This document shows, piece by piece, positions 2,669 through 64,000 of a DNA stretch of 64,000 nt. Source of the DNA: Amphiscolops sp. MND2022 (Eukaryota). The translations under genes and the position numbers were made by a program. Below the pieces are notes generated by a model, which saw only the letters and a program-made list of their open reading frames with translations, had not been told where the DNA came from and made no database searches. The first letter of the stretch is position 1, and the number at the start of each line of letters is the position of its first letter. The stretch is taken from assembly GCA_964187785.1 (NCBI GenBank), contig OZ076409.1, forward strand, positions 98,394,001 to 98,458,000, read 5' to 3'.

Positions 2669-3534
2669 TAGGCGAATTTTTTAAATTTTAGGGTCAAAAC
2701 AACTTGACCTTTACCACAAAAGGGTACCAGGATCCCAGTCTCTGTTCTGAGTTGAATGCTTATTGTTTGAATATTTTGAACCAACAGTTTCTTGTATTGT
2801 AAATCAAAAAATGATCTTGTTTCCAAATTCTGGGTTGTCACGACCTTGCCACTTTCAACACGTTTCCCACTATCAATGATTCTCAAAACGGGTGCTTTTA
2901 CGTCGCCCGTGTTTTGATATTCAATCAAATCAGTGTAAACAAGAATTAGACTAATGCCAGAAATCAAATCCACCGGAAAGTCATTCACAACCCATCTACT
3001 GTTCAGGATGTCTTCGTTTCCTATATGAATACCAAAAGCAGTCTCTTTTCCCTTGAATCCAAGTAGGTTGGGAATGTTTCTGTTAGGAAAAGTGTAGCCA
3101 GCATATGCATCAAATTTAATTTCTAGGCCATTTTCGGTGGATCTATGTTTACCGTCTTCCGTGAGTAAATTTACTTTTGAACGCATTTCAAAAAGCAGGT
3201 TGTTGATATGACTGTACATCGAAGGTCTTATCTTTAGTTTTTGATAATATGGAACAACTGGTTCAGAGTCAATTTCAATTTCCTCTGCTTTTTCTTCATC
3301 AATTTCGTCAAGGTTTTCTTCATCTTCCTTCTTTTTGGTAGTGTGAACGTAATAAAAAAAGTCTGTGTAAACGTTATTAATTTCCGAGGGAAAAATAATT
3401 TCTGATAGAGCCACACGCCAGTCGCCTTCCAGGGAAATGTTTTGTGGGAGTTGATTTTTGAATGCTGCCAATGTATTGTCACCAAAAATTTCTAATGACG
3501 CTGTGGATAATAAATGAACTTCAAATTCGTCCAT
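2668..3534 (-). CDS. Polinton minor capsid protein (penton-like, single jelly-roll)
   Basis: F.V.L.S.AS..IF.DNT...FKNQLP..ISLEGDWRVALSEIIFP and YTDLIEYQ.TGDVKAPVLRII motifs; position between integrase and MCP. Confidence 0.88.
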   Translation of the reverse strand: MDEFEVHLLSTASLEIFGDNTLAAFKNQLPQNISLEGDWRVALSEIIFPSEINNVYTDFFYYVHTTKKKEDEENLDEIDEEKAEEIEIDSEPVVPYYQKLKIRPSMYSHINNLLFEMRSKVNLLTEDGKHRSTENGLEIKFDAYAGYTFPNRNIPNLLGFKGKETAFGIHIGNEDILNSRWVVNDFPVDLISGISLILVYTDLIEYQNTGDVKAPVLRIIDSGKRVESGKVVTTQNLETRSFFDLQYKKLLVQNIQTISIQLRTETGILVPFCGKGQVVLTLKFKKFA

Positions 3535-5335: not shown

Positions 5336-5978
5336 TGTTAATTTCTGTAATTTTTGCTTGTGACGAAGGCAAATAAAATATTGTTGGTCCTGGTCCTACA
5401 ATGTTTGAACAAAAGCGTAGACATTCACTTGTCTTTGGATCCAAATCAATGAGTAAATGACCATGTGGTTCTGCAACAGCGTCTGTGTAGCACTCTTTTA
5501 GAAATACAGCTTTGTTTAATTGTCTTCCAAGATATTCAATTTGCTGTGTGTCACGAGGAGAATTAAAAAGAATAATGTGGGTTGTGTTGAGGTCAATTGT
5601 ACGTGACCACTTACTTTGATGATACAAATTATGTTTGACAAAAATACAGTTAATTCCTCTGTGTCGGCCAGAGACTGCAATTTTTGCAAAGTTTTTATCT
5701 TGGTAAATTTCTTCGCAAGAGTCGTCAAATATCAGCAAACACTCCTGAAGCGTCTTTATCAAATCAAAATCTAGACAACTGATAAACTCGATGTTCATCC
5801 GTTTTTCCACTTCTTTGAAAATTTGTTGGAACTCCCGATAAAAGTAGTAAATTTTTTGAAAGCGTGGATAAAAGGTCTTGGATGTGAGCATAGAAAAAAT
5901 CAGTCGGGTTTTTCCAGATCCAGATGGTCCAACAACTGACATGAAAACTCTTTCTGTAGTAAAAATGACTTTGTTCAT
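5253..5978 (-). CDS. A32/FtsK-like DNA packaging ATPase
   Basis: Walker A GPSGSGKT, Walker B LLIFDD, SGRHRGINCIFVKHNLY and PHGHLLIDL motifs. Confidence 0.94.
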   Translation of the reverse strand: MNKVIFTTERVFMSVVGPSGSGKTRLIFSMLTSKTFYPRFQKIYYFYREFQQIFKEVEKRMNIEFISCLDFDLIKTLQECLLIFDDSCEEIYQDKNFAKIAVSGRHRGINCIFVKHNLYHQSKWSRTIDLNTTHIILFNSPRDTQQIEYLGRQLNKAVFLKECYTDAVAEPHGHLLIDLDPKTSECLRFCSNIVGPGPTIFYLPSSQAKITEINNEREKFAYTQSLGKTHFSTATKTSTTL

Positions 5979-6253: not shown

Positions 6254-6587
6254 TTTTCAAAAAGTGTACTAGGAAATTATTAAATTCAATTCCAATTAAT
6301 TGTACATTATTACACACACGTTGTATATCAGAAATGGTTCAAAATTGTTAAATAAAATGTTAGTACAAAAGATACAAAAAATTGTACTGCGGAACATCAT
6401 GCATTGTTTCCTTAGTACGTGCCGGACCTTGTGTGTCGTTTACACAAGTTTTTTGTTGGCTGTCAATGTTGAGGTAGGTTAAGGTGCAGAGACAAGATTT
6501 TTCTTGCCATTGAGGCACCGAAGGACTACACTACAGAGAGAGTTAGTTTCAAAACAAAAAAAGCATTATATCAAATCACACAAAAAG

Positions 6588-6932
6588 TCAGTTCAAACTT
6601 TTGCTCCTTGGTAAGACGAATATTCTTTGGGTTTCCAGCATTATAAATGAATTCCATTCTTTATCTTTTGTTTCCAAATCGATTTTGAATTTTGAGCCAG
6701 TTTTCCCGGATCCGTAATAGAACCAAATTCTGAGGACACTTTTGGATTTGACTACGTCCCTCACTTCTTGTGGTAGATTCGGGCAATTTTTGTCAATTTC
6801 GACAGGAGGAGGTGGCCTGGAAATGTGCATGTTTAAAGGAGGTAGTTTCTTTTTCATCCTGGACAGTTTTGAGTCTCGTGCACTAGAAGCTACTGACATA
6901 TTCTTTCCAAAAGTCCTGCTTGCTTCCACCAC
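6588..6932 (-). CDS. Hypothetical Polinton accessory protein
   Basis: 114-aa ORF, co-oriented and abutting the upstream ORF. Confidence 0.5.
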   Translation of the reverse strand: MVEASRTFGKNMSVASSARDSKLSRMKKKLPPLNMHISRPPPPVEIDKNCPNLPQEVRDVVKSKSVLRIWFYYGSGKTGSKFKIDLETKDKEWNSFIMLETQRIFVLPRSKSLN

Positions 6933-6936
6933 ACCA

Positions 6937-7506
6937 CTATTGTTTGGAACAGCCTACACACAGACGCTCAAGTTTGGAGTCAACTTTTGATTGGTTTGCA
7001 TTGCGCCTACTCTCTAACCACTGATAAGCAACAGCAGTTTTCAATTTGCTGCAATGCCAGAAATGTTGTTGTTGACTATTCCATGGGAGAAAGTTTGCGT
7101 GGTTCCCACAAGAAACCACAGCATTAACACATAAATGTTTAATTGGGGGACAACCAAGCCTTTGCAAAATGTAAACTTCTTTAAAATAGTTGGAGATAAA
7201 TGCTCTCTTCACATGTCCGTCGACAAAAACAATTGCGTTGGGAAAACGAAGTCGTAAACTGGCCAAATAATTATGGATAGAAGTGTAAGGGTAAACGCCA
7301 CTGTCCCAGTCAATACCGTGTATTCTTTTTGTTAAGAATATTATCGAGTCGCGGTTAATAGTTGAAATTGTAGAAAAGGCTTGAGGAGGTTTGAAAAGTA
7401 GGGTTTCTTGATAATTTTTACTGTGAACGCTCAGCTCTTTAACGATAAGACCGTTGTAGTCAAACCCTTCAAAGTCAATAACAAGAATTTCGTTCTCATT
7501 CAACAT
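6937..7506 (-). CDS. DEDD-like 3'-5' exonuclease-fold accessory protein
   Basis: N-terminal ILVIDFEGF (D-x-E), LTKRIHGIDWDSG, later Cys/His cluster (CGNH...HCS). Confidence 0.6.
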   Translation of the reverse strand: MLNENEILVIDFEGFDYNGLIVKELSVHSKNYQETLLFKPPQAFSTISTINRDSIIFLTKRIHGIDWDSGVYPYTSIHNYLASLRLRFPNAIVFVDGHVKRAFISNYFKEVYILQRLGCPPIKHLCVNAVVSCGNHANFLPWNSQQQHFWHCSKLKTAVAYQWLESRRNANQSKVDSKLERLCVGCSKQ

Positions 7507-7916
7507 TCCAATTCACGGAACCAGTGGGCTTGTGCTGAATATTTGAGTTTCAAAATGCTCCAGAGAGGGCGAACTGAGCATGACCAAAACTTTTGCAATC
7601 TGGTTCTTCTATTCAAGCAGTCACACACGTCACTAAACGCCCCCATAAGCTCTTGCGAGTCGCGAACAATCACAAATAATCTGTACACTTTGCAATACTT
7701 GTAGAAAATTTCACATTTGATTTCTGGTTCTTCTTTCAGCAAATATTTCAAATGGTCCAAAGTAATGTTGTTGAAGTTGCAATTTTTTAGATATACCAAA
7801 CAAAAACTTAGCACATACTTTTGATAAGTTTCGAATTTGTCCGAATTGTCTAATGAAAGTCTATGAAAAGTTTGCTGCACTTTTACAACGTCTATTTTTT
7901 GGGGGTCCATTTCCAA
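7500..7916 (-). CDS. Hypothetical Polinton accessory protein
   Basis: 138-aa ORF overlapping the next ORF; first gene inside the terminus. Confidence 0.55.
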   Translation of the reverse strand: MEMDPQKIDVVKVQQTFHRLSLDNSDKFETYQKYVLSFCLVYLKNCNFNNITLDHLKYLLKEEPEIKCEIFYKYCKVYRLFVIVRDSQELMGAFSDVCDCLNRRTRLQKFWSCSVRPLWSILKLKYSAQAHWFRELEC

Positions 7917-8229
7917 TTTTGATTCTCAGCATTCCTTCCTGCTGCTGATATTTCCTTTATAATGAATTTTTATCAAAACACGTTCGTAACATCAGACGAA
8001 TAATGCATTCGAACAAAACTGTACATAAATTTCACACCCTCTCGTACCCTATTAAACTTTGGTGTGAATTATACGACAAACTAGATTACTTTTTATTGGC
8101 CGATTGATCGCTTGGCACAACAATACTACAACCCGACTTGACTTTTATTACCACCGATTTTCAAGGTTAGTACTTTCCAAACTTTCAGGCATTCAAAGAA
8201 TAAACAAGAGTGTCTACGCTTTTACATGT

Positions 8230-8468
8230 ACTTTCGCAAAAATCCGATTCCAAAAACGAATACAGAAAGAATCCAAAAAACGAATACAAAAAGAATCCGA
8301 CCAATAATTTACTTTCGTAGTCAAAAGCCGAAGTATTTCCGAACACCAATTTGGAAGGACCCCTTCCTTTTAGGGATAGGTCCTAAAATTTCAGAGCAAG
8401 GACCCACCCCGTGAAAACCGAGGACCCCCCCCCCCCCCGTTGAAAGGCCGGCGGAAATCTTAACTACT
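8230..8468. repeat. Probable terminal inverted repeat region of the Polinton
   Basis: C-tracts (8425-8438), a short internal duplication near 8245-8300 and terminal ACTACT. The partner TIR is outside the window, so the left limit is approximate. Confidence 0.6.
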
Positions 8469-9256: not shown

Positions 9257-9734
9257 CTGCTCCCCTCGGCTACTCTTTACTGCAGTACTGACTTGATGAG
9301 TGAAGATATGCAAGTGCAGTCAATGATGTAGATGCAGCTCCGGGTGCAGCAGTTGCCCTCTAGGTCTCTTCTGTCAACCAACCCCGCCCTCTCCCCGGGG
9401 GACTCACCCCCAAAACCACCCCCACCCCCGTACTCCCCAGAAGTGGACGCCATCACTAAAAAATAGCATCATTGAATCTTCGGATGTGCATGTGAAAAAT
9501 GTCACAGGAAAAAAAACAAAACGATTTTAATCAAAATTATAAGGATATTTTTGCATCGAACTTGAATGAAACATTTGTTTGTTTATTGGCCATTACCAAG
9601 GACAGGAAAAACAGGTTTTAACCAGGGTTGTCATGTTTTGAAAAATGTTTCAAAACATCATCGTAAAAAATTTTCAAAACTGTTTCGAAAAAACAAGGTA
9701 TTGCCATTGAACAAGCCGGGAGAAACGGCATAAG

Positions 9735-10170
9735 TCGGCGCCATGTCTAAGGCTCAAAAATAGCTAAAGGACTTCAAAGTGTCAAGTATTCTCATCTACA
9801 GTACCCGAAAAACCCAAAAGTTGGACCGAATTTGAGGGCTAAAAAGGGGACCCTTCGGGATTTTCAAGCATCCATTGTTGCAAAACATCAAAAAATTGAA
9901 AGGGGACCCGTCAGGGATTTTTTTTCGAATAAAAGTCTCACAATGCCGAATAAATCTGAAAGGGAATACCCTTTAGAATCTCCTGGTACTGTATGTTACG
10001 CGGAAAAACATAAAAACCTTTTCGGTTCAGTTCGCTGAGCCAAATATTTCAATTTGGCACCATAAAATTTCGCAGAACTTTCAAGAACTATTTTGGTCAG
10101 TTCGTGTGGATTGAAAAAAAAGTCACTATAATAGTCGCGTTTCACGTCATGAAGCGCCGACTAAAAACTG
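9735..10170 (+). repeat. Dispersed repeat ending in a stem-loop (AGTCGCGTTTCA...TGAAGCGCCGACT); Helitron/Helentron-like non-autonomous candidate
   Basis: A related, more diverged copy lies at about 13330-13655; 3' hairpin followed by an A-run. Boundaries approximate. Confidence 0.5.
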
Positions 10171-12300
10171 AAAAAGGACCCGAGAAGAATAAAAGAAAGA
10201 ACTTTTCGAAGATAAATGCAGAAATTCAAAAAAAATGGACACCGACAGGTTCCGATGCCTTGTCTTCTGCTTCTCCGTAGACTGAGCATTCTCTTTAAAC
10301 TGAATAACCACTATGCCAAACGTATACGTGATATGGCTAAAATTCATCGAATTCGGTGTAATTTGTTTTTTTTTTCAGTCAATTAATTGGAGTATGTTTA
10401 GAGGAGTAAAAGCCACTGCTGTAGTCTGCACTTTGAAGAAACAACACTTTCTTCGTAATGGCCAAACCACTAAGCTAGGGTTGCAGGACCTGCTTACTGT
10501 TCAAAAATTTGGACTCCAAACAGGTAGTCGAAACTTTTACCATTTTTTCTTATTGAAGCTCAAAACAGCTACTGGGTAATAGGCGTTTCAACTTCTTCAA
10601 AATTTGAAAATTCTACTTTTGGGAAAATTAACGTGCTAATTTTTCATGACACACTAGTAACTACTTCGATTGCTTTAAAAGCGAGTTAAACAATTGAAAT
10701 TGTATAAACTTGCTGTGATCAAATTCTAAAAGTATGTCAAACAATATAGGGTTTCTTCAAAGGCCCTGATACTTGATGAACCAAAAAAAACGGCACGCAT
10801 AAAAATTTTTGAGCTCCTAAAATGTCAAATTGCAAAACAATTTTGAACGCTGAAATTCAGCTTGTCAATCATTCAATTTGACAATATTGCTTTCTCACAT
10901 TCGAGTGTCAAAGAACTTTCGTACATCAAAAGTGCGAACAAAATGACTGGAAAAGATGTCTAGACTTTCTCGGAAGGCTCAAAACGTGCTTAGAGTTGAA
11001 GATGTGATTACGTAATGAAACCTTCATTTTGAATCCTTGACAGAAAAAAGAAAGCATATCAGCGCCTTGTTTACAAATATTACAATTTTGAGCAGTGACA
11101 TTATTGTTCGTTCCGTATTTTTTACCCAATACAGTACTGTGATTAAAAAAACGTCCCCCGGGGCGATTTTAGGATTGATTTTCTGGAAATCTGTTGAAAA
11201 TTTTGAAAAACATCGAAAATAAAAGTTTCGTAAAATTTCATCTAGTTTATACTAATGATTTTTTTCTGGGAAAAAAATTGAGAAAGTTACATGTAGTTGA
11301 TTTTCAGCAAATTTGGGACTTTTTTCCGTTTTTTAAATTTTTGACCGTTTTATCCACAGTTTTTTTGGCAAGTTTTATGCTCAAATAACTCGCACAAATA
11401 TACTCATTATATGGATCTGTTTCGATTTCAAAAATTATCAACCGTTTTCGAAATATCATGCTCGAAAGGTGAAATTTCGTCGATTTTCATGTATTAAGAT
11501 AGGAAAGGAACGTTTCGCGGCGAAAAATTGCGATTATTTTTTCATTTATAATGTTTTGAAACAAAAAAAATATCATTGAATTCTATACAATCTGCAGAAT
11601 TCGATGAATTTAAAATTTTCAGAAAAGTATTTCGAAAAACCTGCCCAAAACTGGGAAAACAGGAGAAGTGTTCTTTCTGCGCCTGAGATTTCACTCGATG
11701 CGCCAATCAAAATTTTAAGTGAGAGCAAATAAACAATTCTAATTGGTATCTTCTTTTACAACACCAAACCCCGGTTTCAGTACGGGCGGTCCTTATAGAA
11801 TTTCTTTTGCTAACAATTCTAATTGGTTGATAACGACGCTCAGCGCATAGGGGACGGACGATTTCTCAGAGTACTGTATAAAAGATGTCACGAATTGATA
11901 TACTCACAGAGGTTGTCGTTCGAGCCGAATGTCAAATCCGGAAGCGACTGATCGTCCGAATTGTCGTCGCCACTGAAACAACAAGCGATGTAACATCTAA
12001 GATCTAAAACGATTTAAAAAATGGACTGAAAAGCATACGGAGAGAATAAAATGAAAAGAACTTGGAACGTTTGATATTGCAGCGGCGTAAAGATTCAGAA
12101 CTGGCATATTTGGCCTACATACCGGAAACTGGCATTCTTCTTCAGCTTGCCAGAACTTCTGGAAAGGAATGAGATTTTGGCATCAGTCTCGATCATGATT
12201 TACCGATTGCGCAATTAATGAAAGGAAGCTTTTGAATGATGAATTAATAAATGGTGAATACCAAAAAAGTTGAGCATCAACTTCGACACATAATTGAGGC

Positions 12301-12635
12301 CAGGGTTTTGACATCGCTATTTTTTTCCGCTAATCGCTAAACCGCTAATTTTAAAATCACTATTTCGCTAAAAGTTTTTTCTGAATCCTATTAAACGTTT
12401 AACTTCAAGTATGTTTTAAAATGACTTAACTTAATTCAGTTTTTCCAAGAAAAAAGACTAGAATTTTTCATACTGTGTGGATTTTACAACCGTAGGAGTT
12501 GAAATTTTTCAAAATTCATTTTGAAACTCCGTGTATACTCGAAGACATCCCGAATTTGGACAATCTGTTAGTTGCCGCAAATTTGAATCGCTAAAAAATC
12601 GCTGAAAAATTCTAAATAGCGGTGTCCAAACTCTA
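12301..12635. mobile_element. hAT-type MITE (335 bp)
   Basis: TIRs CAGGGTTTTGACATCGCTATTT / AAATAGCGGTGTCCAAACTCTA; 8-bp TSD ATTGAGGC / ATCGAGGC. Confidence 0.8.
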
Positions 12636-13329
12636 ATCGAGGCTATCATTCGACATAAACTGATTCACCAATCATGGGCGTCTAAATTTTGTGACCAACT
12701 TGAACTTACTTAACTTCAAGATACGAAAATGAGAGCTTATGCAGCTCCAAGTCATTTCTATCGCGGCTAGAATTGACTCCAGCCATTTCAAGGCTAAAAG
12801 AAGAAGAACCTGTTTACCAAACACTAAATGACACTCTAACGATGAGAATTACGACGTAGAAAATTGTGCCTTGACAATATCCGTAATAAACATCTTAGTC
12901 CTGAATCCCGGGGATGATTATTCCCTGGGGATGAAAAAACTGGCATATCCATTGATTGTTCAGATTCAAATCTTGGTTTCTAGACTAGTGTTGGCTGCTC
13001 ACTGATACCAGAAAATTATTTCCAGCAGTGATACTAGTCACCAAAAGTGGGTAACTAGTATCAGGTATTTAGTGACTACTCATAGCGTCGAAAAATGAAA
13101 AGTCCTTCTTCCTGATCAATTTGTTGGGCAAAAAATTTCTCCAATGCATCAATTGAGAAAAGGTTAAATAGGTTGTTCACAGTAACATGCATAGTAACAG
13201 TGCAAAATCATGTATTTCTGAGAAATCAATTTCGTTATGAGAATCCAAAGCGTAAAGTTTTAAAACATGCCCAGGACGTATTTATGAAAAGCTCAGAAAA
13301 CAGTTTCGAGACACAAAGGGTGCCTTTCA

Positions 13330-13655
13330 TGCTCGATAAGACTCAGAAACCACTTTTTCACCAACTGGGAACAAAAAAAACCTTTTGATAAAAAAACGTC
13401 GATTTTGTTCTTTCGGAAAATGTCGCATAGTGCCGAAAAAGGCAAAAGGGGGACCCTTTGGGATTCATAAACATACATTCTGTTGCAAAATATCAAAAAC
13501 TCGAAGGGGGAATGTTCCAAAAAAATTTATAATGAAAGTAGTTTTAGTAGTTTCTGTAAAAAGTGGACCGATGAGTGTGATGTCTGTGGTCTGAAGAAAA
13601 AAGTCACTGTAAGAGTCGGGCATTTTTTCTTCAAAGGAAAAAGCGCTGACTAAAA
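13330..13655 (+). repeat. Second copy of the 9735-10170 dispersed repeat family
   Basis: Shares AAAAGGGGGACCCTTTGGGATT and AAAAAAGTCACT..AGTCG..GCGCTGACTAAAAA. Confidence 0.5.
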
Positions 13656-13715
13656 ACGGTGTGCAACGAGATCAGTTCGTTATAAAAGGAAATTCATTGT
13701 AAGCGGGCTCACCTG

Positions 13716-14032
13716 GGATCTCTTTCACTATGCCCCCCCCCCTATATCACTCGTTACACTATGTCCCCCCTAGAGAAAATAAATGTTTGTGGCTCATTTA
13801 TATTTATCTCCTATTGGCTAATCTCCCTGGCTATTCTGTCAATCAATTGATGTCGTCATAACTAACGACACTTTTTATTGGTTCTTATTATCAAAATCCC
13901 CACTCAGCCAATCAGAAGCGTTGTTAGATAAGAGCAGATCTGCGCTATTAGAATGTGCAATACATGTATTTAATAGCGCTTCACTATATCCCCCCTTTTT
14001 GCTGTAGGGGGGGGATATAGTGAAAGAGATCC
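13716..14032. mobile_element. MITE (317 bp) with 8-bp TSD
   Basis: TIR GGATCTCTTTCACTAT(G/A)(C/T)CCCCCC; perfect TSD CTCACCTG at 13708-13715 and 14033-14040. Confidence 0.85.
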
Positions 14033-14960: not shown

Positions 14961-15487
14961 TAATCTGAAAATATAAACAACATGAAAGCACCAAACTAAA
15001 TGGAGATTTATAAATTTGATAGAACGTAAAAAATGCAATGCGTAGACGCTATAAACCAATTGAACTGCTAGAACTTCAACGTCAACTGCCTTCTGCGATA
15101 CTCGTCGCGCTGGTTGAGGGCTGGACGGAACTTCTGAATATATAGCGCTTCAAGAGTCAATAATTTGGAGTCGGAACGGGCAAAATCAAGAATCTGAGGT
15201 TCAGGAAAAGCGGTATTTGGAGAACATTGTGATAAATGTTGGGTTACTGGTGGAGACGATCTCTGATGCTCGTACATTCTTGTCGATAGATGACGGACAG
15301 TTTGTCCGACATAGCTGGCATTACAGCCAGGGTATCGCAGAAGGCAGTATCGCAGAAGGCAGTTGACGTTGAAGTTCTAGCAGTTCAATTGGTTTATAGC
15401 GTCTACGCATTGCATTTTTTACGTTCTATCAAATTTATAAATCTCCATTTAGTTTGGTGCTTTCATGTTGTTTATATTTTCAGATTA

Positions 15488-53650: not shown

Positions 53651-56376
53651 TGGGAAAGAGTACATTTCCAAGTCTTTTCGAAGTTTCTGTATATCAAACC
53701 GAATCAAACGTGAGCATACTGCCCCTTATTCGCCTCATCAAAATGGTGTGAGTGAACGTCGCTGGCGAACAACAGTCGAAATGACTCGCTGCATGCTAAA
53801 AACAGCAAAACTCGGCAATGAATTTTGGGTTCGTGCCTTGCACACTGCTTTTTACATTTCAAGCCGTTGCCTCACAGTTAGTTTACCAAAAGGTAGAACG
53901 CCCTTCGAAATGTGCTTTGGTAAAAAACCAGATCTTTCCAACTTGAAAGTTTTTGGATGTACTGCTTTCAAACACATTGAAACGCATCAAGACAAACTTT
54001 TCGATGAAGCCACCAAAGAAGTTTTTGTTGGTTATTCTGAGGATTCCGAAGCATACATTTTGTACAATCCTTATTCTAAAAAGACTTCGTTTTCTCGCAA
54101 CGTCTCCTTTGATGAGACTTTTTTTGATTTTTTTTGCAGCGCACCCAAGTCAAAACATCCGAGCATTTGTAACCGAAAGGCCGGCACCGAAACAAGTTTT
54201 GACTGAAACACAGAAACATTTTTGCGAAAAGTCTTCAGTTCCTATTTTACCGACTGAAACATTGAATGATTTCGAAACTGAAACAACACCTTCCCCCGTT
54301 GATGTTGTTTCATCTGAAAACATTGATGCCAATGAAAGTAGTGCTTTTTTGCGGTCTCGAAGTGGGAGAGTTATCAAACCTTCTGCGTATCTAGATGACT
54401 ACGTTCTTTTAACGGATGACATGGATGAGAATCTAACTTATCGTGAAGCAATGATGTCATCGCTTAAACGCGAATGGATCGAAACTACTCAAAAAGAGTA
54501 CAATGCGCTCATTGAGAACAAGACCTGGGTGCTTTGTCCGCTTCCCCCGGGCCGAAAAGCAATTGGAAGCCGGTGGGTTTTCAAAATTAAGCGACACGAC
54601 GACGGAACTATTCAAAAATTCGAGACTCGTTTCGTAGCCCAAGAGTTTTCGCAAGTTTTTGGGGAACAATTACGATGAAATTTTTGCGCCTATTGCCAAA
54701 CTTTCTACCTTGAGGATTTATTTTGCGCTCGCTGCTTCTTGGTCGACTTTTGTTTTTCAGTTAGACGTCCGTTCAGCCTTCCTCAATGCGAACTTGAGTG
54801 ATGAAATTTATATAGAACAACCAGAAGGCTTCGCGCAAGCGGGGGCTAATGGTGAAACACTTTATTGCAAGCTTCAAAAATGCCTTTATGGTTTAAAGCA
54901 AGCAGGGAGGGAATGGAACAAAACTTTAACCCAGTGGTTTTTGAAGAATGAATTTATACAGTCTGCCGAGGATCATTGTCTTTTTCGTTGCGATGGGACT
55001 AATGGTTCCCTACTTTTTGTACTAGCTTGGGTCGACGACATTTTGTACTTTTCAAACAACGACAAAAAGCTGCATGATTTCAAGGCGAAACTCAGCGATG
55101 CATACAGCATCGATGATCGTGGGAAAATGACTTGGTTTTTGGGATGCAATGTTAAACAGTCACGCGGTTGCAATTTTCTTAGTCAGCGGTCATATATAAA
55201 GGATATTTTGCGCAAAAGTCATATGTCTGATTGTAAACCAGTTAGTACTCCAGCTATTCTCCATACGAAACAGTCTAAATCGGACTGCCCTATCGAAGGT
55301 AGTGAAAAGTCACTTGATATTTGCGAACAGAAACAATATCGTAGCTTAGTTGGAAACTTAATGTATTTGTCCGTTGTTAGTCGCCCCGATATTTGCTTTG
55401 CTGTCTACAACTTAGCACAATTCGTGTCAAATCCTGGTAAAGCTCATTGGTGTGCATTGAAAGACCTTCTCCGTTTTCTCAAGGGCACCGAGTCTCTACC
55501 TCTTGTGTATAAACGCTCTGAAAATCTCGAACTTTTTGGTTTTTCGGATTCCGATTGGGCCACCGACAAGGACGATCGCAAGTCAACTTCGGGTTTTTGC
55601 TTCAAACTAAGTCGTTCTGGTTGTGTTGTCTCTTGGGCGTCCAAAAAACAAGGGTGTGTGGCATTTAGCTCTTGTGAAGCCGAGTATGTTTCGTTGGCTT
55701 TGGCTGCACAGTCCATTTGCAAGGCTTGCTCACATTCTTCTGCTTGATGACGATGGACACGCCTGTTCTGTTGTGTGGTGACAATCAAGGGGCACTCGCA
55801 CTGGCCAGCAACCCTGTCGCCCACAAACGTGCTAAACACATAGAAACCCGACACCACTTCATCCGTCAACTGGTTGAGGACAAACGCATTCAACTGTCTT
55901 ATGTCTCCACAAAAAACAACTTGGCTGATATCTTCAGCAAGAACATACCCAAGCCTGCCTTCAATGAGCTCTCATCGCAACTCTTCGTCATTCAGCCACC
56001 TCGATCAACAACTTAACCCTTGCCCCCCTCACAACTCAATTATTTTACATTACTCATTATTGTGTTTATGTTATCACTGGGACTATGACGACTTCCAGCT
56101 TCTCTTCAACCGATGGATTGAGCCCTCTCATCCGCTGCCTCGACACGACAGATGGTCAAGCACAGTGGTTCGCCATCATCAACCAACAACAACCCTCGAA
56201 GTCTCTCATCGAGCGGGGGTGTTAGAGATCGGTGAAGGTCAAAGGACCATTAAAGGTCAACCATCTCAGACTATACCAGACTGAACTAATTTAGTATATT
56301 ATTGTTGTTTGTATACATGTACCTGTTATTTTATCTTCACTTGACTGAATCACTTTATCAACTCAAAACACAAAAT
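53651..56376 (+). repeat. Tandem duplicate of the Copia-2 3' part (INT-RT-RH and truncated LTR 56220-56376)
   Basis: Near-identical to 50805-53531, offset 2845-2846 bp. Confidence 0.95.
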
Positions 56377-56549
56377 CATTACAAGACACAACTTTCACGA
56401 GCCTCAAAAGTTTATTAAATATCCTTAAATGCTCCACAAGGGAATTTTCACTGGCCCCTAATGTATTATTTTTTGTATTATTATTACCTATTTGTATGTT
56501 TTAACTTTTTCGAAAATTTAAGGATTTTTAATATTTGGTGAAAACGGAG

Positions 56550-57149: not shown

Positions 57150-58839
57150 TCAAGCTGCCAAGGAGGTTTTTGTGTTTTTCGAGATTAACTCGCGATAGTT
57201 TTCATAGTCCTCGTAGTTTCCTCTGTGTCCTTGAACTTGAATTTTGAGGGCTTCAAAAGCGAGACTGGTTTTTACTTTGAACCGCACCCCCAAGAGGACA
57301 TGATTGAAAAACTTCTCAGCATCCGGCCTGGTTTCAAGGAGATCCCATTTCTTACCGAGAATTTCATCAAACACTTTGTTTCCATGCGATCCCCGCTCCT
57401 CGTTGATAGTGAATTTCTGCCAATGGAAGAAAACTAATGAAATACAATTATAAAACAAACGCTTGATGAAGGTTTCATGTATAGTCTTCAGATACAAAAT
57501 TGCTGAAAGTTATGAAAGCCCTTGGAGTTGCAACGCTGGATTAAAAAATTGTTCAAGATTTTCAATGCCCTGGGAAGTTCAATAATTACACTCCACAGTG
57601 TTTTCAAAGACTTGTTGTCAATGATGCTATTAACTACTTTGACAATTAGCATATGCTTACCGAATCTCTTGACGATTCACAGCCCAAAACTTGCCTAATG
57701 TAAAATGGCACAGGACTGTATATTATTTCTGTGTGGCTGATTGTGTCGTAAGAGAGGAAAAGTTCCCGTTTGATGGCGGAAAACACTGTGAAAACTTCAT
57801 CAACTGGGTGCAAGTTAGGGTTCCTCACTGTGAGTTCTGGGGATTTCATATAATTGATTTCCTGTTGCTTCTTAAGTGATTGATTGGGGTCTACTGACAG
57901 TCGAACTTCTGTGGCTGGCAGTCCAATGTATCTCTTACTCCCGTCTAAAGTTACTTCTGCCATCGCGTGCGCCTCCCTGCGGTCAAAAAAAAGCTTTCGT
58001 ACAACCCCCGTCTGTGACAAGTCTATTACAACACGTGATCCTGCTGCTAGTATTCCGTTCGTAGTGGGAACAAGTGTCAGGCTAACGGTTTCGTCAGATC
58101 CGCACAATGCCCGCAAAATGTCTCCAATGTTGATCTTCGACAGTTTCTCTTTCACTACAGCTTTCACTTCAACTTTCAATTTTTTGGCAACTGGGATTGG
58201 TATCATTTCTTCTTCGTCAGCTATTCCTTCTTTTTGCCAGTCAGAGTTCCTCAACTGGTTGTACGAAATATAAAACTTCTCCACATTGGAGCAAATCAGC
58301 AAAGTTTTTCTAAACCTATCATTGATTAGCACAGTTCCAGATTTCAAAACTGATGCTTCTTGGATCATTTGTTTCATCTCCCAAGGCTCCATAATATCAC
58401 CAACCGATGGCGCAGTCGACCCAACAAAATATACTATATCGCCTTTTGCGAATTTTTCCTTAGTGTAATCCAGTTTGTAATCAATATTGTGTCGTCTGGG
58501 AAATAGAACTTCTTCAAGAGCTTTCCTGACTGGCCAATTTTCAAGATGAACTTGGGGGTCACAAAAAAGAACCCGAACAGGGTCCTTGTTTTTTCCCCAG
58601 CGCGTAAAATTAACACGAACATGATTGGTGCCTTCAAAACCTTCGATTTTAGCCTCCTCCCAGATTTGAGTGTCAGGATCCAAAGCTTGAACGACTGGCT
58701 TAGTCTGGAAGAAAACATTGGCAAAAAGCATTGTTGATTGTTCGAAATTGATTGACCAATTTGATTCGAGGTAAAGCGAAGAGTGGAAAATGAAATTTAC
58801 GGTTTCTGAATGCTTTTAAATTGCGTCTTCGCAAGTCAT
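57150..58839 (-). CDS. Spliced gene for a Tudor/chromo-barrel-like protein, possibly pseudogenised
   Basis: Main exon 58704-57661 begins VQALDPDTQIWEEAKIEGFEGTNHVRVNFTRWG (Tudor/MBT-like barrel). Phase-0 intron GTAAGC(57660)...TTGGCAG(57417) joins exon 57416-57150. Putative first exon 58839-58801 has an in-frame TAA. Confidence 0.68.
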
Positions 58840-59073
58840 AATTTGCCTCAATTCAGTTCTGGTGTTAGACTCAGATTTTTGATGATGTTGCAATGTGAGT
58901 CCGTTGACACCAAATGTAAATCTACGGCACCTGTTTCTCTTTTCGATGAAAGCGTTAACGCGGATAAGCGTATAAGAATGTAGTAAGCCTCAAATGTGAA
59001 TGTTGCTAATTTTGGTAAACGTTTTCCCATCTATTTCGAAATCCTATTCCTTAAAAGCGGTCCCGGTATTACA

Positions 59074-62000
59074 ATGAGTTATTGCAATGAGGAGATAATT
59101 CTGAAAAAACACCTAATCAATTTGCCAGAAGGCCTGTATGTTGATTTATCGTTATTCGACTACTTAGCAGAAGAAACAATAAATGACAAGCAAAGGAAAG
59201 TGAAACCAGCAATCACTTGTCTCTTGAATGGCACAAACGTTCAATTCACCGATGTTTTCATCAGTGCAACGCGCAATGAGACAGGTAGACGAGCAAAATA
59301 CAATGCTGTGGTATTCAAAATTGCACTCTTGCTTGTCTTTAAAGGATTCACTGGCCTATCGTGGACAGATCGTCGCCGACGCTTTGTTGCACACTTCTTC
59401 GGCCCAGAATTCATTCCAGACGGAAAGCCAGTAGAAAACAACTCGGAAATTAGCAAATTCTTACCGAAACTGGAGAATCGCGAACCACCAATAGCAAAAA
59501 ATTCGGATTTACACGAGCCCGCTTTTTGTACTAGTAGCAATCATTTCTGGAGTGATGTGTTGAATCAAATGAACAATCGAGATTTGGAAATTGGGAGTTT
59601 GATTCAACATTTGAAAAATAAAGCCTATATTGCTACCGAAAAAAAAACTTGTACAACGGCCTAATTATTTGAAACAAATCATGAAAGCACTGTTCCCTTC
59701 GAGATACACCCATCAATTCATGGAGCATTTGTATTTGATCAAGAAAACTGGTAATGTTGTTGATTTGGTCGGTTATCTCAAGACTTTATTTGACTTACAG
59801 GGCATAAGAAATGATCAGTTAGTTCCCAGTGTTACAACATTAAACAAATTGTCAAATCCTCTACATTGCTTTTATTACAACATATTCCAACCGGAGAAGA
59901 CCTACTCAGGTTTTAGAGCCGATTTGATTACCTTAGTGAGAACCTCTCACTACCTTCTGACGGGAATTGAATCGTTAGAAGGTGTTGCAGTTGATCTTTG
60001 GGGTGACGGGGTTGAAATTGGGAACTCGGAGTGTACGAGAATGGTTTTCCGATTTCTTGATACAAAAGGGAAAATCAGTCCACAATCTTCAGATGCATGT
60101 TTCACATTTGCTTGCTTCAAAGGTTTGTGCAAAAGTGATTGAACGTTGTTAGGAAAAATGAATACATTCTATTCAACTAAAGTGTTCAAGAAAATCAATG
60201 GTTTAAACTAAGCAAAGATGTTAAACTGAAAACGAGTTGCGTAGCAATATTAACAAACTATAATGGAATGTTTTCAAGCGCTTTTAATGTAGTGGATAAA
60301 TCTATTGTCTATCTCAAGTTTTTACATATGTGAATACAGTTGTGAACAACATTTGTTGTTTTAAACGAGTCCTTTTTGTTTTTCAAACGAACTGTAGAAC
60401 CGCAGTCGATGCTTTATATTCAACTAAACTGATTCGAAAACTGTTGATATATTTTGAATATGAAAAAGATCTATAGATTCGTTTGAATTATGTGAGTTAA
60501 TTGACCATACACTTGCGAAGGAAATTGTGCATTAAACGGTAAAAAATTGGAAAAACGGAAATAAGTCCCGAATTAGCTCGAAATCAGCTGTTTGTAACTT
60601 TCTCAAATTTTGTCCCGGAAAATCTTTTAAAAAATATCAAGAAACTTTTCTCACATTAATCTCATTGGTTTACCAGCCTCAATAAAGAAGTAAATACTTG
60701 CATTAATATAAGCAATTCGCTAGAACTTTTCTTCAAAAACATGCTATATCAAATATTTTTGTACCAAAGATGCAGATACGAGACTGTTTTGCACATGTTT
60801 GCAGGTCATGATAGCAGATTTGCAATGGAACAAAACCTCGGCCCAACACAAGTTGGAGTTCAAAAGAGTGGATGGCTTTACCAGCAGACAAAGACGCTGG
60901 TCGAGGACTACAAAGTGAAACTGACGTTGTCCGGCGATTAGCCATTTGTAATGCGATTGGTTAATGGTGACAACGTTGAAGACGACTCCAAATGCGCAAT
61001 CTATGTTGGCAAAAAGTCGTCAATTGGTTTTGACGTTGAAGATGGAAAGAAAGTTTTCCAACCTTTTTTGTCAACGACAGTTGATCCCAAAACGAAGAAA
61101 CGGACAACGCTGAATATACCCTGGCAGGTGTTACCGTCAACTTCCCTGGTTTATCTTGACGACATCCGAAGAGTTTGCGTTGACACTTGCCATGGTATCA
61201 CAAGAATGGTTGAGAATGACTTGCAAAAGTTTTGCAATCTACTAATTGAGACCCGCGGGAAAACAATTTACACCGTTTTGAACCTATTCGAATCCAATTT
61301 AACCGAGAGAGGAGTGAAGGAGCCCAGGTTCAGATTTAATATCAATACAAGCAAAAACGGACCAACTAGTTGCAATTCTGTGTCTTTAAGTGGAAAAGAA
61401 GCCCTGCTCGCGATTGCTCATCGGGACGAATTTGGAAGCGACAGTGGAATACAAAGCAACCTTTTTGATAATGTCTTCAAAGAAAACGAGTACTTAGTGG
61501 GCCATCCGGCTAACCTAGAAACTCTTAAACTGTGTCACAAGCATGAAGTATTACTTGAAGACAAAACAAATTGGTATTTGATGTCAAAGTACGATGCCGC
61601 AGAGCTATGGCGGCAATCCTTGAACAATATGAACATTATTCTCAGAGGTTCGAAAAACGGTTTCCCTCAAAAACTCATTGATGAATACAATTTCTGGGCG
61701 GAGACATATTATCATATCTCAATGGCTTTCTTTGGCGAAGTTACGCCATATAAAGTGAAAATCCTTCTTGTTCCCAAATTGGTCGAATCGGGTTGTATTC
61801 GGTCACCTTGGGACCACTTAACCGAAGCAATGGAGCACTCGAATCATCGAGCACATCAATTCTACCATCAAAAGACAATGCGCGGGGGAGGTAAACTACT
61901 TCACGTTGATCCCATGCTTCAAGATCTGGTTTTGTCGTTTTTTCGATGTTATATCCACAGCAAGCAACAAATCGCTTTTGAAGAGTGTATGATGCAGCTC

Positions 62001-62702
62001 CGCAGTATCTTCCGGCCAATTCCAACTTTCCACATAGATTACCTATGGATATGTAGGAAAACAATTAAAGCGAGGACTATTCAAATCGATACACCTTGCG
62101 AGAAAGATTCGATTTTTCTAGGCCTACGTTTCACCGTATTTGGAGATTTTCGAAAAGCTAACCTAACGCAGGTTCAAGTGAACAAGATGATTCTCGAATG
62201 TGGCGGCCTGGTAATGACCCAAGATGCCCTGAAAACACTGACTGAAAAGCACTCCCATCTACCGTTTTGCTATGTTTTAGTACAAAATGAAACAGATCTT
62301 AGAATAGCAACTGGAGAACCAGGGGTTGGCCGACCAATGGAGAAACGTGAAAAAATTGTCGAAAAAAAGGAAAGAGCTTTAAAGTTAAGATGTTATGTAC
62401 AATCGGGAGTTGTTTTTTTGAACGTAAAGTTTGTTGTTGATTGCTTGAACAAACGTACTTTGCTTGATCCAGCTAACTATGAAATAAAACCAGGAAATGA
62501 CATACCAATAGTGCCCATTCGTGACATGAAGCCCTTGTTCAAACGACAATGCGAGGCCAAAGAAATAATTGAAGGAGTTACCAAAGGCCCGTTTGTCCTT
62601 ATCAAAGAATTTCGGAAGCAAAACTACTCAAACCTCACACAAGACATCGAGAAGATATTTGGCAAAAGACATACAAAAAAAGATGAGACGTCATCGTTTT
62701 GA
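59074..62702 (+). pseudogene. RAG1/Transib/Chapaev-related DDE transposase with C-terminal BRCT domain (about 980 aa reconstructed; one frameshift, one stop, one intron)
   Basis: VDLWGDG (D, 60005), TLSGD (D, 60936), CVDTCHG (DxxH), TPY..., TEAMEHSNH (E, 61833). Phase-1 intron 60123-60804 gives FACFKG|HDSRF. Poly-A frameshift near 59640; TAG at 60939. BRCT at about 62110-62490. Confidence 0.8.
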
Positions 62703-62929
62703 ACTTTACATCCTAATTTCGTTATTAATGCTGGTTTTAAATGTTGTTCCCTTTGTGACGTTGTATTTCTATAATGTACCCTAGTCTTAAATAATCGAAA
62801 AAAAATCTGCACACAAAAGATTGTTTTCAAACAGAAGTGACTGGTGCAAAGGGCTCAAAGCAACAAGTTCTAATTAAATCTAAATCTTACTGGTACAAGA
62901 AATCTCACAGGAAATATGTTTTCAGAGGC

Positions 62930-64000
62930 AAAGTCGATGCACACATTAGTCTCGATTACTGTTTAGGAGAGTCGATGCACATATTAGTCTCGATTACTAT
63001 TTAAGAAAGTCGATGGACACATTAGTCCTAATACTGTTTAAGAAAGTCGATGCACACATTAGTCTCGATTACTGTTTAAGAAAGTCGATGCAAATATTAG
63101 TCCTACTACTGTTTAAGTAAGTCGATGCACTCATTAGTCTCCAATACTGTTTAAGAAAGTCGATGCACACATTAGTCTCGATTACTGTTTAGGAGAGTCG
63201 ATGCACATATTAGTCTCGATTCCTATTTAAGAAAGTCGATGGACACATTAGTCCTAATACTGTTTAAGAAAGTCGATGCACTCATTAGTCTCCAACACTG
63301 TTTAAGAAACTCGATGCACACATTAATCTTAAGACTGTTTAAGAAAGTCGATGGACACATTAGTCTCGAATAGTGGTTAAGAAAGCCGATGCACTCATTA
63401 GTCTCCAATACTGTTTAAGAAAGTCGATGCACATATTAGTCCTACTACTGTTTAAGAAAGTCGATGCACTCATTAGTCTCCAATACTGTTTAAGAAAGTC
63501 GATGCACACATTAGTCTCGATTACTGTTTAGGAGAGTCGATGCACATATTAGTCTCGATTCCTATTTAAGAAAGTCGATGGACACATTAGTCCTAATACT
63601 GTTTAAGAAAGTCGATGCACTCATTAGTCTCCAACACTGTTTAAGAAACTCGATGCACACATTAATCTTAAGACTGTTTAAGAAAGTCGATGGACACATT
63701 AGTCTCGAATAGTGGTTAAGAAAGCCGATGCACTCATTAGTCTCCAATACTGTTTAAGAAAGTCGATGCACACATTAGTCTCGATTACTGTTTAAGAAAG
63801 TCGATGCACATATTAGTCCTACTACTGTTTAAGAAAGTCGATGCACTCATTAGTCTCCAATACTGTTTAAGAAAGTCGATGCACACATTAGTCTCGATTA
63901 CTGTTTAAGAAAGTCGATGCACATATTAGTCCTACTACTGTTTAAGAAAGTCGATGCACTCATTAGTCTCCAATACTGTTTAAGAAAGTCGATGCACACA
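62930..64000. repeat. 37-38-bp satellite with higher-order structure; continues beyond the window
   Basis: Unit AAGAAAGTCGATGCACACATTAGTCTCGATTACTGTTT; 339-bp (9-mer) repeat at 63223 / 63562; 113-bp (3-mer) repeat after about 63760. Confidence 0.95.

Follow-up and report, generated by a model that had tools for sequence, protein, structure and literature searches.

A large transposable element of Amphiscolops sp. with a predicted RAG1-like transposase that carries a BRCT tail

The stretch of DNA described here, referred to as the window, is 64,000 nucleotides (nt) long and comes from Amphiscolops sp. MND2022 (GenBank assembly GCA_964187785.1, contig OZ076409.1, positions 98,394,001 to 98,458,000 of the forward strand). 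Towards its right end it contains a gene for a predicted transposase, with a catalytic core resembling that of RAG1 and a C-terminal BRCT domain, within what is probably the left part of a large cut-and-paste transposon. The features of the gene and of the element, together with related copies on other contigs (L numbers; protein products carry P numbers), are listed in Table 1.

The transposase gene and the ends of its element

The gene is distributed in the window over four open reading frames (ORFs), which with one intron join into a two-exon product of approximately 981 amino acids (aa). An initial annotation, made from the sequence alone, had joined three listed ORFs into one protein of about 980 aa by way of a poly-A insertion/deletion at about 59640, a phase-1 GT-AG intron and read-through of an in-frame TAG at 60939; each of these elements is borne out, the intron by comparison between copies as well as by its sequence. 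The +1 frameshift between the first two ORFs sits in the run of 9 A, which numbers 8 A in copies L001 and L003 and in contigs from four public sequencing runs, and the whole N-terminal part is a single 397-codon ORF in L003. The TAG is CAG (Gln) in L001 and its product P0001 and also in the four-run contigs, with Q, T, N, S or D at this position in other family members. In addition, 12 nt (4 aa) after 61537 are missing from the window copy and present in all sister copies.

The four public runs represent two samples, for which Logan contigs were compared over window positions 58900-62800. All four have one A fewer at 59639, a C at 60939 and the 12 extra nucleotides, and since these contigs are free of the lesions a lesion-free version exists in the species, noting that such contigs drop minority variants. 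The window copy is recently decayed, with one frameshift, one stop and one 4-codon deletion; these may be true decay of the copy or, for the A-run only, an assembly error. L001 has an extra T of its own near 59727. Over the same interval the contigs have word depths of 240-770, the runs being 0.7-1.4 Gb in size. Word depth does not measure copy number; if the runs are whole-genome, it might reflect a very high copy number of near-identical elements.

Across the intron, with GT at 60123 and AG at 60803-60804, the joined protein reads ...ACFTFACFK-G-HDSRFAMEQ.... Of six aligned copies, five preserve the donor AAAG/GTTTGT and four the acceptor TTTGCAG/G; the intron varies between copies in both length and sequence (that of L003 is about 510 bp shorter than that of the window), and similarity returns exactly at the acceptor. 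Homologues from other samples are uninterrupted at the junction (...RGKDSRF...; ...YRGKDSRFAMEQ...), and P0006 has a 23-residue in-frame insertion at exactly this point, presumably a short intron that has been read through. The splice donor of L003 is mutated from GT to AT, and the acceptor of L004 from CAG to CTG. Within the window intron, word depth rises about five-fold (approximately 3500 versus 650) at 60472-60602 in three of the four runs, and a small, high-copy repeat resembling a miniature inverted-repeat transposable element probably lies there.

Similarity to four other copies on different contigs starts sharply at 56377, the first base of a 21-bp terminal inverted repeat (TIR), CATTACAAGACACAACTTTCA. 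The 21-mer occurs once in the window (0.01 expected by chance). L004 has it in inverted orientation at its opposite end, and L005/L008 and L001/L011 have, likewise inverted at their opposite ends, a match to its first 16 bases. The termini are CATTAC...GTAATG, and the element begins with CA and ends with TG. Collecting genomic copies, which the initial annotation had recommended for defining the element, yielded these 21-bp TIRs together with 2-bp target site duplications (TSDs) in all three complete copies. No copy has a match of 3 bp or longer, and three such 2-bp matches out of three would arise by chance about once per few thousand trials. The leftmost 7.6 kb of the element lie in the window, and the remainder continues past the window edge. 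The window copy and L001 have different flanks and are 99.5% identical over 6.6 kb, and represent two recent insertions. The target of the 20.2-kb copy is near-palindromic around GT, CTATTAGAGTAC-GT / GT-GCTCTATTAG (L001 about 5564-5583, L011 about 3088-3107), a hint that the target preference is symmetric or that the insertion went into the end of another repeat.

These borders bear on the proposal that the gene is a domesticated host recombinase, an immobile RAG1-like host gene with a BRCT domain. Purifying selection and wide conservation, described below, are also compatible with such a gene, but it would not be expected to occur as many copies at different loci (78-99.5% identical, several of them broken), nor to have sharp borders, TIRs and 2-bp TSDs in three copies. 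We regard the proposal as very improbable and reject it.

Table 1. Coordinates of the gene, its element and related copies (window positions unless a contig is named)
Feature	Coordinates	Strand	Remarks
Left TIR, 21 bp, CATTACAAGACACAACTTTCA	56377-56397	+	Element start; flanking dinucleotide AT at 56375-56376
Head-to-head partner ORF, 361 aa, element cargo	57646-58731	-	Kept as 361-aa ORF in L003
Transposase gene, exon 1 start to stop	59074-62702	+	Four ORFs and one intron joined
ORFs composing the gene	58996-59664, 59630-60142, 60741-60941, 60951-62702	+	From the ORF listing of the window
Exon 1	59074-60122	+	N-terminal region and first part of RNase H-like core
Run of 9 A, frameshifting	59639-59647	+	8 A in sister copies L001 and L003
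V-D-L-W-G-D-G, candidate first catalytic Asp	59990-60010	+	In exon 1; Asp columns 96% and 100% conserved
Phase-1 GT-AG intron	60123-60804	+	From sequence and comparison between copies
Exon 2	60805-62702	+	Rest of core, linker, BRCT domain, conserved tail
S-G-D, candidate second Asp	60930-60938	+	In exon 2
In-frame TAG	60939-60941	+	Immediately after second catalytic Asp; lesion of window copy
D-x-x-H motif	61176-61193	+	In exon 2
Glu motif TEAMEHSNH	61821-61847	+	In exon 2
Single BRCT domain (about 62112-62480) and conserved LDPxxY...PLxxxQ tail	62112-62549	+	
Stop codon TGA	62700-62702	+	Transposase stop
Internal satellite array, 113-bp unit, 339-bp higher order	62930-64000	.	Tandem Repeats Finder (TRF); continues past window
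Copy L004	L004 1932-13198		11.3 kb; TSD TA/TA
Copy L005/L008			22,951 bp; TSD AG/AG
Copy L001/L011			20,179 bp; TSD GT/GT
JmjC/SET genes in TIR-bounded copies	L001 14975-15556	-	
JmjC/SET genes in TIR-bounded copies	L004 12493-12903	-	
JmjC/SET genes in TIR-bounded copies	L005 19278-20291	+	
JmjC/SET genes in TIR-bounded copies	L011 4001-4840, L009 1074-2036		

Fold and motifs of the catalytic core

The transposase belongs to a large protein family. Word-indexed searches showed that four further long contigs from a single ENA assembly encode products 98%, 87%, 87% and 80% identical, and recovered about 25 further relatives at 34-57% identity. The core profile A4 matches 458 clusters at E <= 1e-3, and 148 at E <= 1e-30, among 1.84 billion representatives. 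Full-length members have 950-1150 aa, and the one named member among the matches listed is P0168, Holothuria leucospilota KAJ8050599.1, which UniRef labels 'BRCT domain-containing protein'. L006, from another sample and encoding the homologue P0015, is compact at about 4.5 kb, with a single gene and no chromatin cargo; it has complex inverted ends of about 400 bp (2318-2709 and 6507-6800), no clear TSD, and termini without clean definition.

Across 62 family members the Asp, Asp and Glu columns singled out in the initial annotation are 95-100% conserved. They fall in the conserved acidic motifs D-x-W-G-D, S-G-D and E-x-x-E-x-S-N-H and in the predicted model they belong to strand 1, the terminus of strand 4 and a helix, respectively. 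Near-invariant acidic or His columns in these 62 members (P0015 numbering) are D241, D245, D284, D325, D395, H398 and E405, followed by H612, E615, E618 and H622.

Comparison with the RAG1 and HzTransib structures, which the initial annotation had advised, matched both. In the AlphaFold model of P0015, which is 37-44% identical, the core has a predicted local distance difference test (pLDDT) score of 80-95, and the first 41 matches in a Foldseek search of the PDB are RAG1, HzTransib and BbRAGL, with BRCT domains ranking next; no hAT, Mutator, piggyBac, Tc1 or bacterial transposase is among the top 50 structures. VIA-align superposes residues 153-636 on mouse RAG1 469-975 with Z 17.7 over 328 residues and a root-mean-square deviation (rmsd) of 3.4, and gives Z 15.9 for BbRAGL and Z 15.5 for HzTransib. 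A second model was made of P0001, which the 99.5% identical sister copy L001 encodes in exon 2 and which is 98% identical to the window ORF (pLDDT 83.4, predicted template modelling score 0.80); its residues 12-367 align with RAG1 665-978 at Z 12.6. The RAG1 alignments of the two models span 256-335 residues. By language-model features the P0015 core comes close to RAG1_RNase_H clusters, with a score of 0.94. As modelled, the core is RNase H-type with the overall architecture of RAG1 and Transib.

The layout held in common with RAG1, BbRAGL and HzTransib consists of a pre-RNase H region, an RNase H fold and a long helical insertion before the Glu, and these three rank best, and are the only transposases, among the top-ranked solved structures (Z 12.6-17.7). 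The order Asp, Asp, D-x-x-H, E-x-x-E is that of RAG1, and the spacings of about 80 and 290 residues are similar to the 108 and 254 residues of RAG1. The motif pairings proposed in the initial annotation hold as a coarse fit, with SGD near D708 and TEAME near E962, and are putative at the level of individual residues. RAG1 also has a zinc site of the type C727/C730/H937/H942. This motif is unconserved here: among the 62 members a motif scan found no Cys column at or above 70% between the second Asp and the Glu, where the best pair is a C-x-C at 54% and 69%, and the same scan, done without a reference alignment, found no H(3-4)H before the catalytic Glu.

Sequence profiles give a different picture from fold. 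Neither family profile tested against PDB sequences (A1 and A4) matches a RAG1 or HzTransib chain; the sole PDB match of A4, mevalonate diphosphate decarboxylase, is a chance match. Pfam searches of all window ORFs and of core pieces from nine members, at E values up to 10, returned no transposase family, and the models DUF1280, Transposase_21 and RAG1 did not match the core; the matches obtained to TrbK, KCTD_C and Ntox28 are at chance level. The best 150 profile matches and the best 120 word-indexed matches all belong to the family, and none of them bridges to a known transposase domain. The kinship to RAG1 rests on predicted structures and language-model features. Neighbours in AFDB and Atlas are mostly unnamed eukaryotic proteins, including uncharacterised transposase-like ones, and clusters bearing DUF1280 are near both by features (0.93) and by shape, almost level with RAG1.

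The BRCT tail

Both the family profile and the fold bear out the initial identification of the C-terminus as a BRCT domain. In the 583-aa ORF 60951-62702, Pfam BRCT_2 is matched over residues 388-511 at E 3.4e-4 with 21.3 bits, below the cutoff of 27.3, and BRCT_2 is matched in 6 of 30 relatives, with a best E of 7.6e-7. Of the PDB chains matched by a BRCT-only profile of 38 members, 54 contain a BRCT domain and one, which has none, is a chance match; the best match is the BRCT of yeast ligase IV (Dnl4; E 1.7e-6). The BRCT domains of both models superpose on those of MDC1, Rev1, 53BP1, BRCA1 and XRCC1 with Z 10-11 and rmsd 2.2-3.0 over 90-100 residues, and a search of AFDB Swiss-Prot returned BRCT-driven matches of low template modelling score alone (Pescadillo, ligase IV, XRCC1). 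In the family, conservation is 89-98% at the BRCT columns G, F, G and GG.

Compared with the BRCT domains of break-repair proteins (Dnl4, XRCC1, MDC1, 53BP1, BRCA1/BARD1 and Rev1), the fold is the same (Z 10-11) and there is a common signature of a hydrophobic strand ending in Gly, a GG after helix 1, and an aromatic-x-x-x-Cys/Ser helix 3. In contrast to these, the domain here is a single copy fused to a transposase, holds a Lys/Glu-rich insertion of about 40 residues, has Phe/Tyr in place of the usual Trp, lacks a conserved pocket Ser/Thr, and is followed by the family-specific LDPxxY...PLxxxQ tail. The Gly of strand 1 is conserved and the residue before it varies (F, I, H, L, V...); the helix-2 Lys is frequent and variable across members.

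Core and BRCT domain lie in one uninterrupted ORF in the window (60951-62702) and in more than 50 relatives, connected by a linker of 60-90 aa that is of low confidence in the models. Between L001 and L003 the ratio of nonsynonymous to synonymous substitution rates (dN/dS) has an overall value of 0.17, with 0.14 for the core and 0.18 for the BRCT domain, at a dS of 0.35-0.46, and both the core and the BRCT domain are under purifying selection. Because the two share an ORF in this many relatives and have dN/dS values of 0.14 and 0.18, we conclude that the fusion is real, old and maintained. The contrary proposal is that the BRCT domain is a separate or captured gene, fused only by read-through in the window copy, for which nothing speaks beyond the low-confidence linker. 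It is scarcely credible given that the window ORF spans core to BRCT without interruption, that the same ORF occurs in homologues from several samples and one named species, and that the BRCT columns and their dN/dS show constraint; we reject it, and with it falls the reservation in the initial annotation that the BRCT part could belong to a separate gene. A full-text literature search found, within the library covered, no paper linking BRCT to Transib, Chapaev, Mirage, EnSpm or CACTA transposases.

The initial annotation had suggested a transposase that may recruit or mimic break-repair machinery. The tail would most likely tie the transposome to the cell's break response. The reading we tentatively prefer, at somewhat less than even odds, is that it recruits end-joining factors, or repair factors of the poly(ADP-ribose)(PAR)/XRCC1/PARP type, to the donor break. 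Elsewhere, the BRCT domains of XRCC1 and LIG3 pair subunits, and those of ligase and RFC1 grip DNA ends. The tail could accordingly be a structural or DNA-handling part of the transposome, serving subunit pairing or DNA-end grip and not acting as a host adaptor, a substantial minority possibility. The domain is single, with no tandem pair, and has no conserved canonical phosphate-pocket Ser/Thr; XRCC1 BRCT2 and BRCA1 BRCT2 (1757-1859) fit about as well as MDC1, and there is a weak profile match to the BRCT of NAD-ligase, all of which suit such a part. The best sequence match, however, is the Dnl4 BRCT, a protein-protein adaptor, and the helix-2 Lys is frequent, both of which speak against a structural role. 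What probability these two readings leave goes to docking on phosphorylated chromatin.

Cargo, classification and proposed role

Other genes travel with the transposase. The partner ORF that faces it head to head has no Pfam match, and its Atlas features score 0.80-0.83 to Tudor/Agenet clusters, a weak lead; a Tudor-like ORF is likewise present in complete copies. The satellite array that follows the transposase in the window is also found after it in L001 (12148-14305) and L005 (about 12100-13880). Beyond the array, complete copies carry a JmjC gene (L001, L004) and a SET gene (L001, L005), and then the right TIR; both genes exceed Pfam cutoffs, and precomputed Pfam marks agree for L001. ORFs of 355-376 aa without family assignment accompany the JmjC and SET genes inside the copies. 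By Pfam, there is no RAG2-like (kelch/PHD) gene among the neighbour ORFs.

Several smaller observations concern the copies themselves. In L001 an 80-bp stretch (window 62816-62895) recurs after the satellite array, and a 91-bp piece between the head-to-head genes (window 58801-58891) forms four tandem repeats with a period of 136 bp in L005 (7738-8146). In L004 the 3' two-thirds of the transposase gene are present twice in tandem (6341-8403 and 9293-11355). For the L003 copy no right end was located; at L010 3896-3911, about 14 kb from the L003 transposase, lies the inverted left end of another copy, and element copies appear to cluster or nest. Outside the element, window positions 13716-13964 (249 bp) are 91.6% identical to positions 15007-15255 of the 23-kb copy and could represent either a piece of a further copy or a nested repeat.

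Taking the evidence together, we interpret the locus as the left part of an animal cut-and-paste transposon of about 20 kb, with a transposase composed of a RAG1-like core and a BRCT domain, and assign this interpretation a probability of roughly 0.85. A number of points weigh against it. At E values as permissive as 10, no sequence profile connects the core with a transposase family in Pfam or with RAG1 or Transib, and the equivalence of catalytic residues with RAG1 is putative, being taken from models. Transposition is deduced from element structure, and the right end of the window copy is outside the window. No RNA run was found, and contigs of the four public runs contain no splice joint, so the intron is supported by its sequence and by comparison between copies. 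The phosphate-pocket Ser/Thr before the strand-1 Gly is unconserved, which weakens a classic phosphopeptide-reader role. As to the initial designation as RAG1/Transib-like, it stands for the core fold and fails for strict membership, as judged by TSD, TIR, zinc site and hidden Markov model tests; kinship to RAG1 likewise finds no match by sequence profile and a match by fold (Z 12.6-17.7). Given the near-identical copies and the unbroken version, the element may still be active.

Transib elements have a 5-bp TSD and a CACAATG-like heptamer, with CAC invariant, and a nonamer at 12/23 spacing (PMC1131882). The ends begin with CA in both Transib and the present element, which differs in its 2-bp TSD, in a TIR beginning CAT with no A-rich nonamer and no nonamer-like layout, and in its length of about 20 kb as against 3-4 kb. 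Unlike RAG1, the transposase has a C-terminal BRCT domain, no RING/NBD-type N-terminus, no conserved zinc motif and no RAG1 Pfam match, and unlike in the RAG1-RAG2 pair its neighbours are the Tudor-like ORF plus, in other copies, JmjC and SET genes. Canonical Transib was rejected on the 2-bp TSD, the T at the third base of the TIR, and the lack of a RAG1 Pfam match and of a CCHH motif.

Among Repbase groups, Mirage elements have 2-bp TSDs. The CMCT (CACTA-Mirage-Chapaev-Transib) clade comprises EnSpm/CACTA, Mirage, Chapaev and Transib, together with Plavaka, ESTA and Lanisha, with 5'-CA...TG-3' termini and TSDs of 2-5 bp (2-3 bp in Plavaka, TA in ESTA), and its lineages are united by C(2)C and H(3-4)H motifs; ESTA has RAG1-like similarity in HHpred, and fungal elements of the clade carry a TET/JBP dioxygenase (Kojima 2025, PMC12730594). 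The Amphiscolops element has CA...TG termini and a 2-bp TSD, and shares with the clade its termini, its TSD range and, as in ESTA, a structure-based likeness to RAG1. It differs in that C(2)C/H(3-4)H is unconserved, in that a BRCT tail is described for none of the CMCT lineages (PMC12730594), and, compared with the fungal elements, in having an animal host and cargo of the histone-methylation type, the JmjC dioxygenase and SET being analogous to TET/JBP. Because its termini and TSD are those of the clade and the features of Transib are absent, we file it, on termini, TSD and fold, as an unnamed lineage within CMCT and outside Transib, and as no strict Transib or RAG member.

The element could instead belong, as an ordinary member, to a group that already has a name, such as Mirage or some other EnSpm/CACTA subgroup of Repbase whose TSDs are 2 bp, in which the BRCT domain has gone unremarked and only the annotation is new. 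The 2-bp TSD and CA...TG termini are within the CMCT range (PMC12730594), the transposase-like eukaryotic neighbours and DUF1280 clusters score almost as high as RAG1, and UniRef already labels the Holothuria member by its BRCT domain. We nevertheless consider this unlikely, as no Pfam model (DUF1280, Transposase_21 or the RAG1 families) matches the core, the C(2)C and H(3-4)H motifs are unconserved in the family, and the literature search gave no paper pairing BRCT with these transposases. A broader proposal, doubtful but possible, is that of a large unnamed lineage with the RAG1 fold, in which the zinc site is replaced, the stagger is 2 bp, a break-response BRCT is built in and the cargo is JmjC/SET/Tudor-like; it would extend over the 458 clusters and include, at a minimum, members from echinoderms and from the present animal.

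RAG1, Transib and hAT enzymes form a hairpin on the flanking DNA. In the mechanism that we propose, the N-terminal helical region of the transposase would bind the TIRs, and the enzyme would pair the element ends (synapsis), nick them and release the element, presumably with a hairpin on flanking DNA as for those enzymes. The 3' OH ends would then be joined to target phosphates 2 bp apart, giving the 2-bp stagger. The donor site would need host end joining, and the BRCT tail would couple the break-making transposase to the cell's break response.

The family widens the range of RAG1/Transib/CACTA transposons to include a 2-bp TSD, the lack of a CCHH zinc motif and giant size, and in an animal it parallels the TET/JBP dioxygenase-carrying transposons of fungi. 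With two insertions that are 99.5% identical and an unbroken version among public reads, it seems that a functional enzyme would be open to testing. RAG1 is derived from a Transib-like transposase, and the way in which enzymes of this kind were coupled to end joining is an open question; in vertebrates, RAG cleavage is linked to non-homologous end joining (NHEJ) through separate proteins. A RAG1-shaped transposase and a repair-type BRCT domain in one polypeptide, selected across a large family, offer a direct handle on this link, and if the BRCT tail does couple cleavage to end joining, the enzyme would be a natural, self-contained version of the connection between RAG cleavage and NHEJ.

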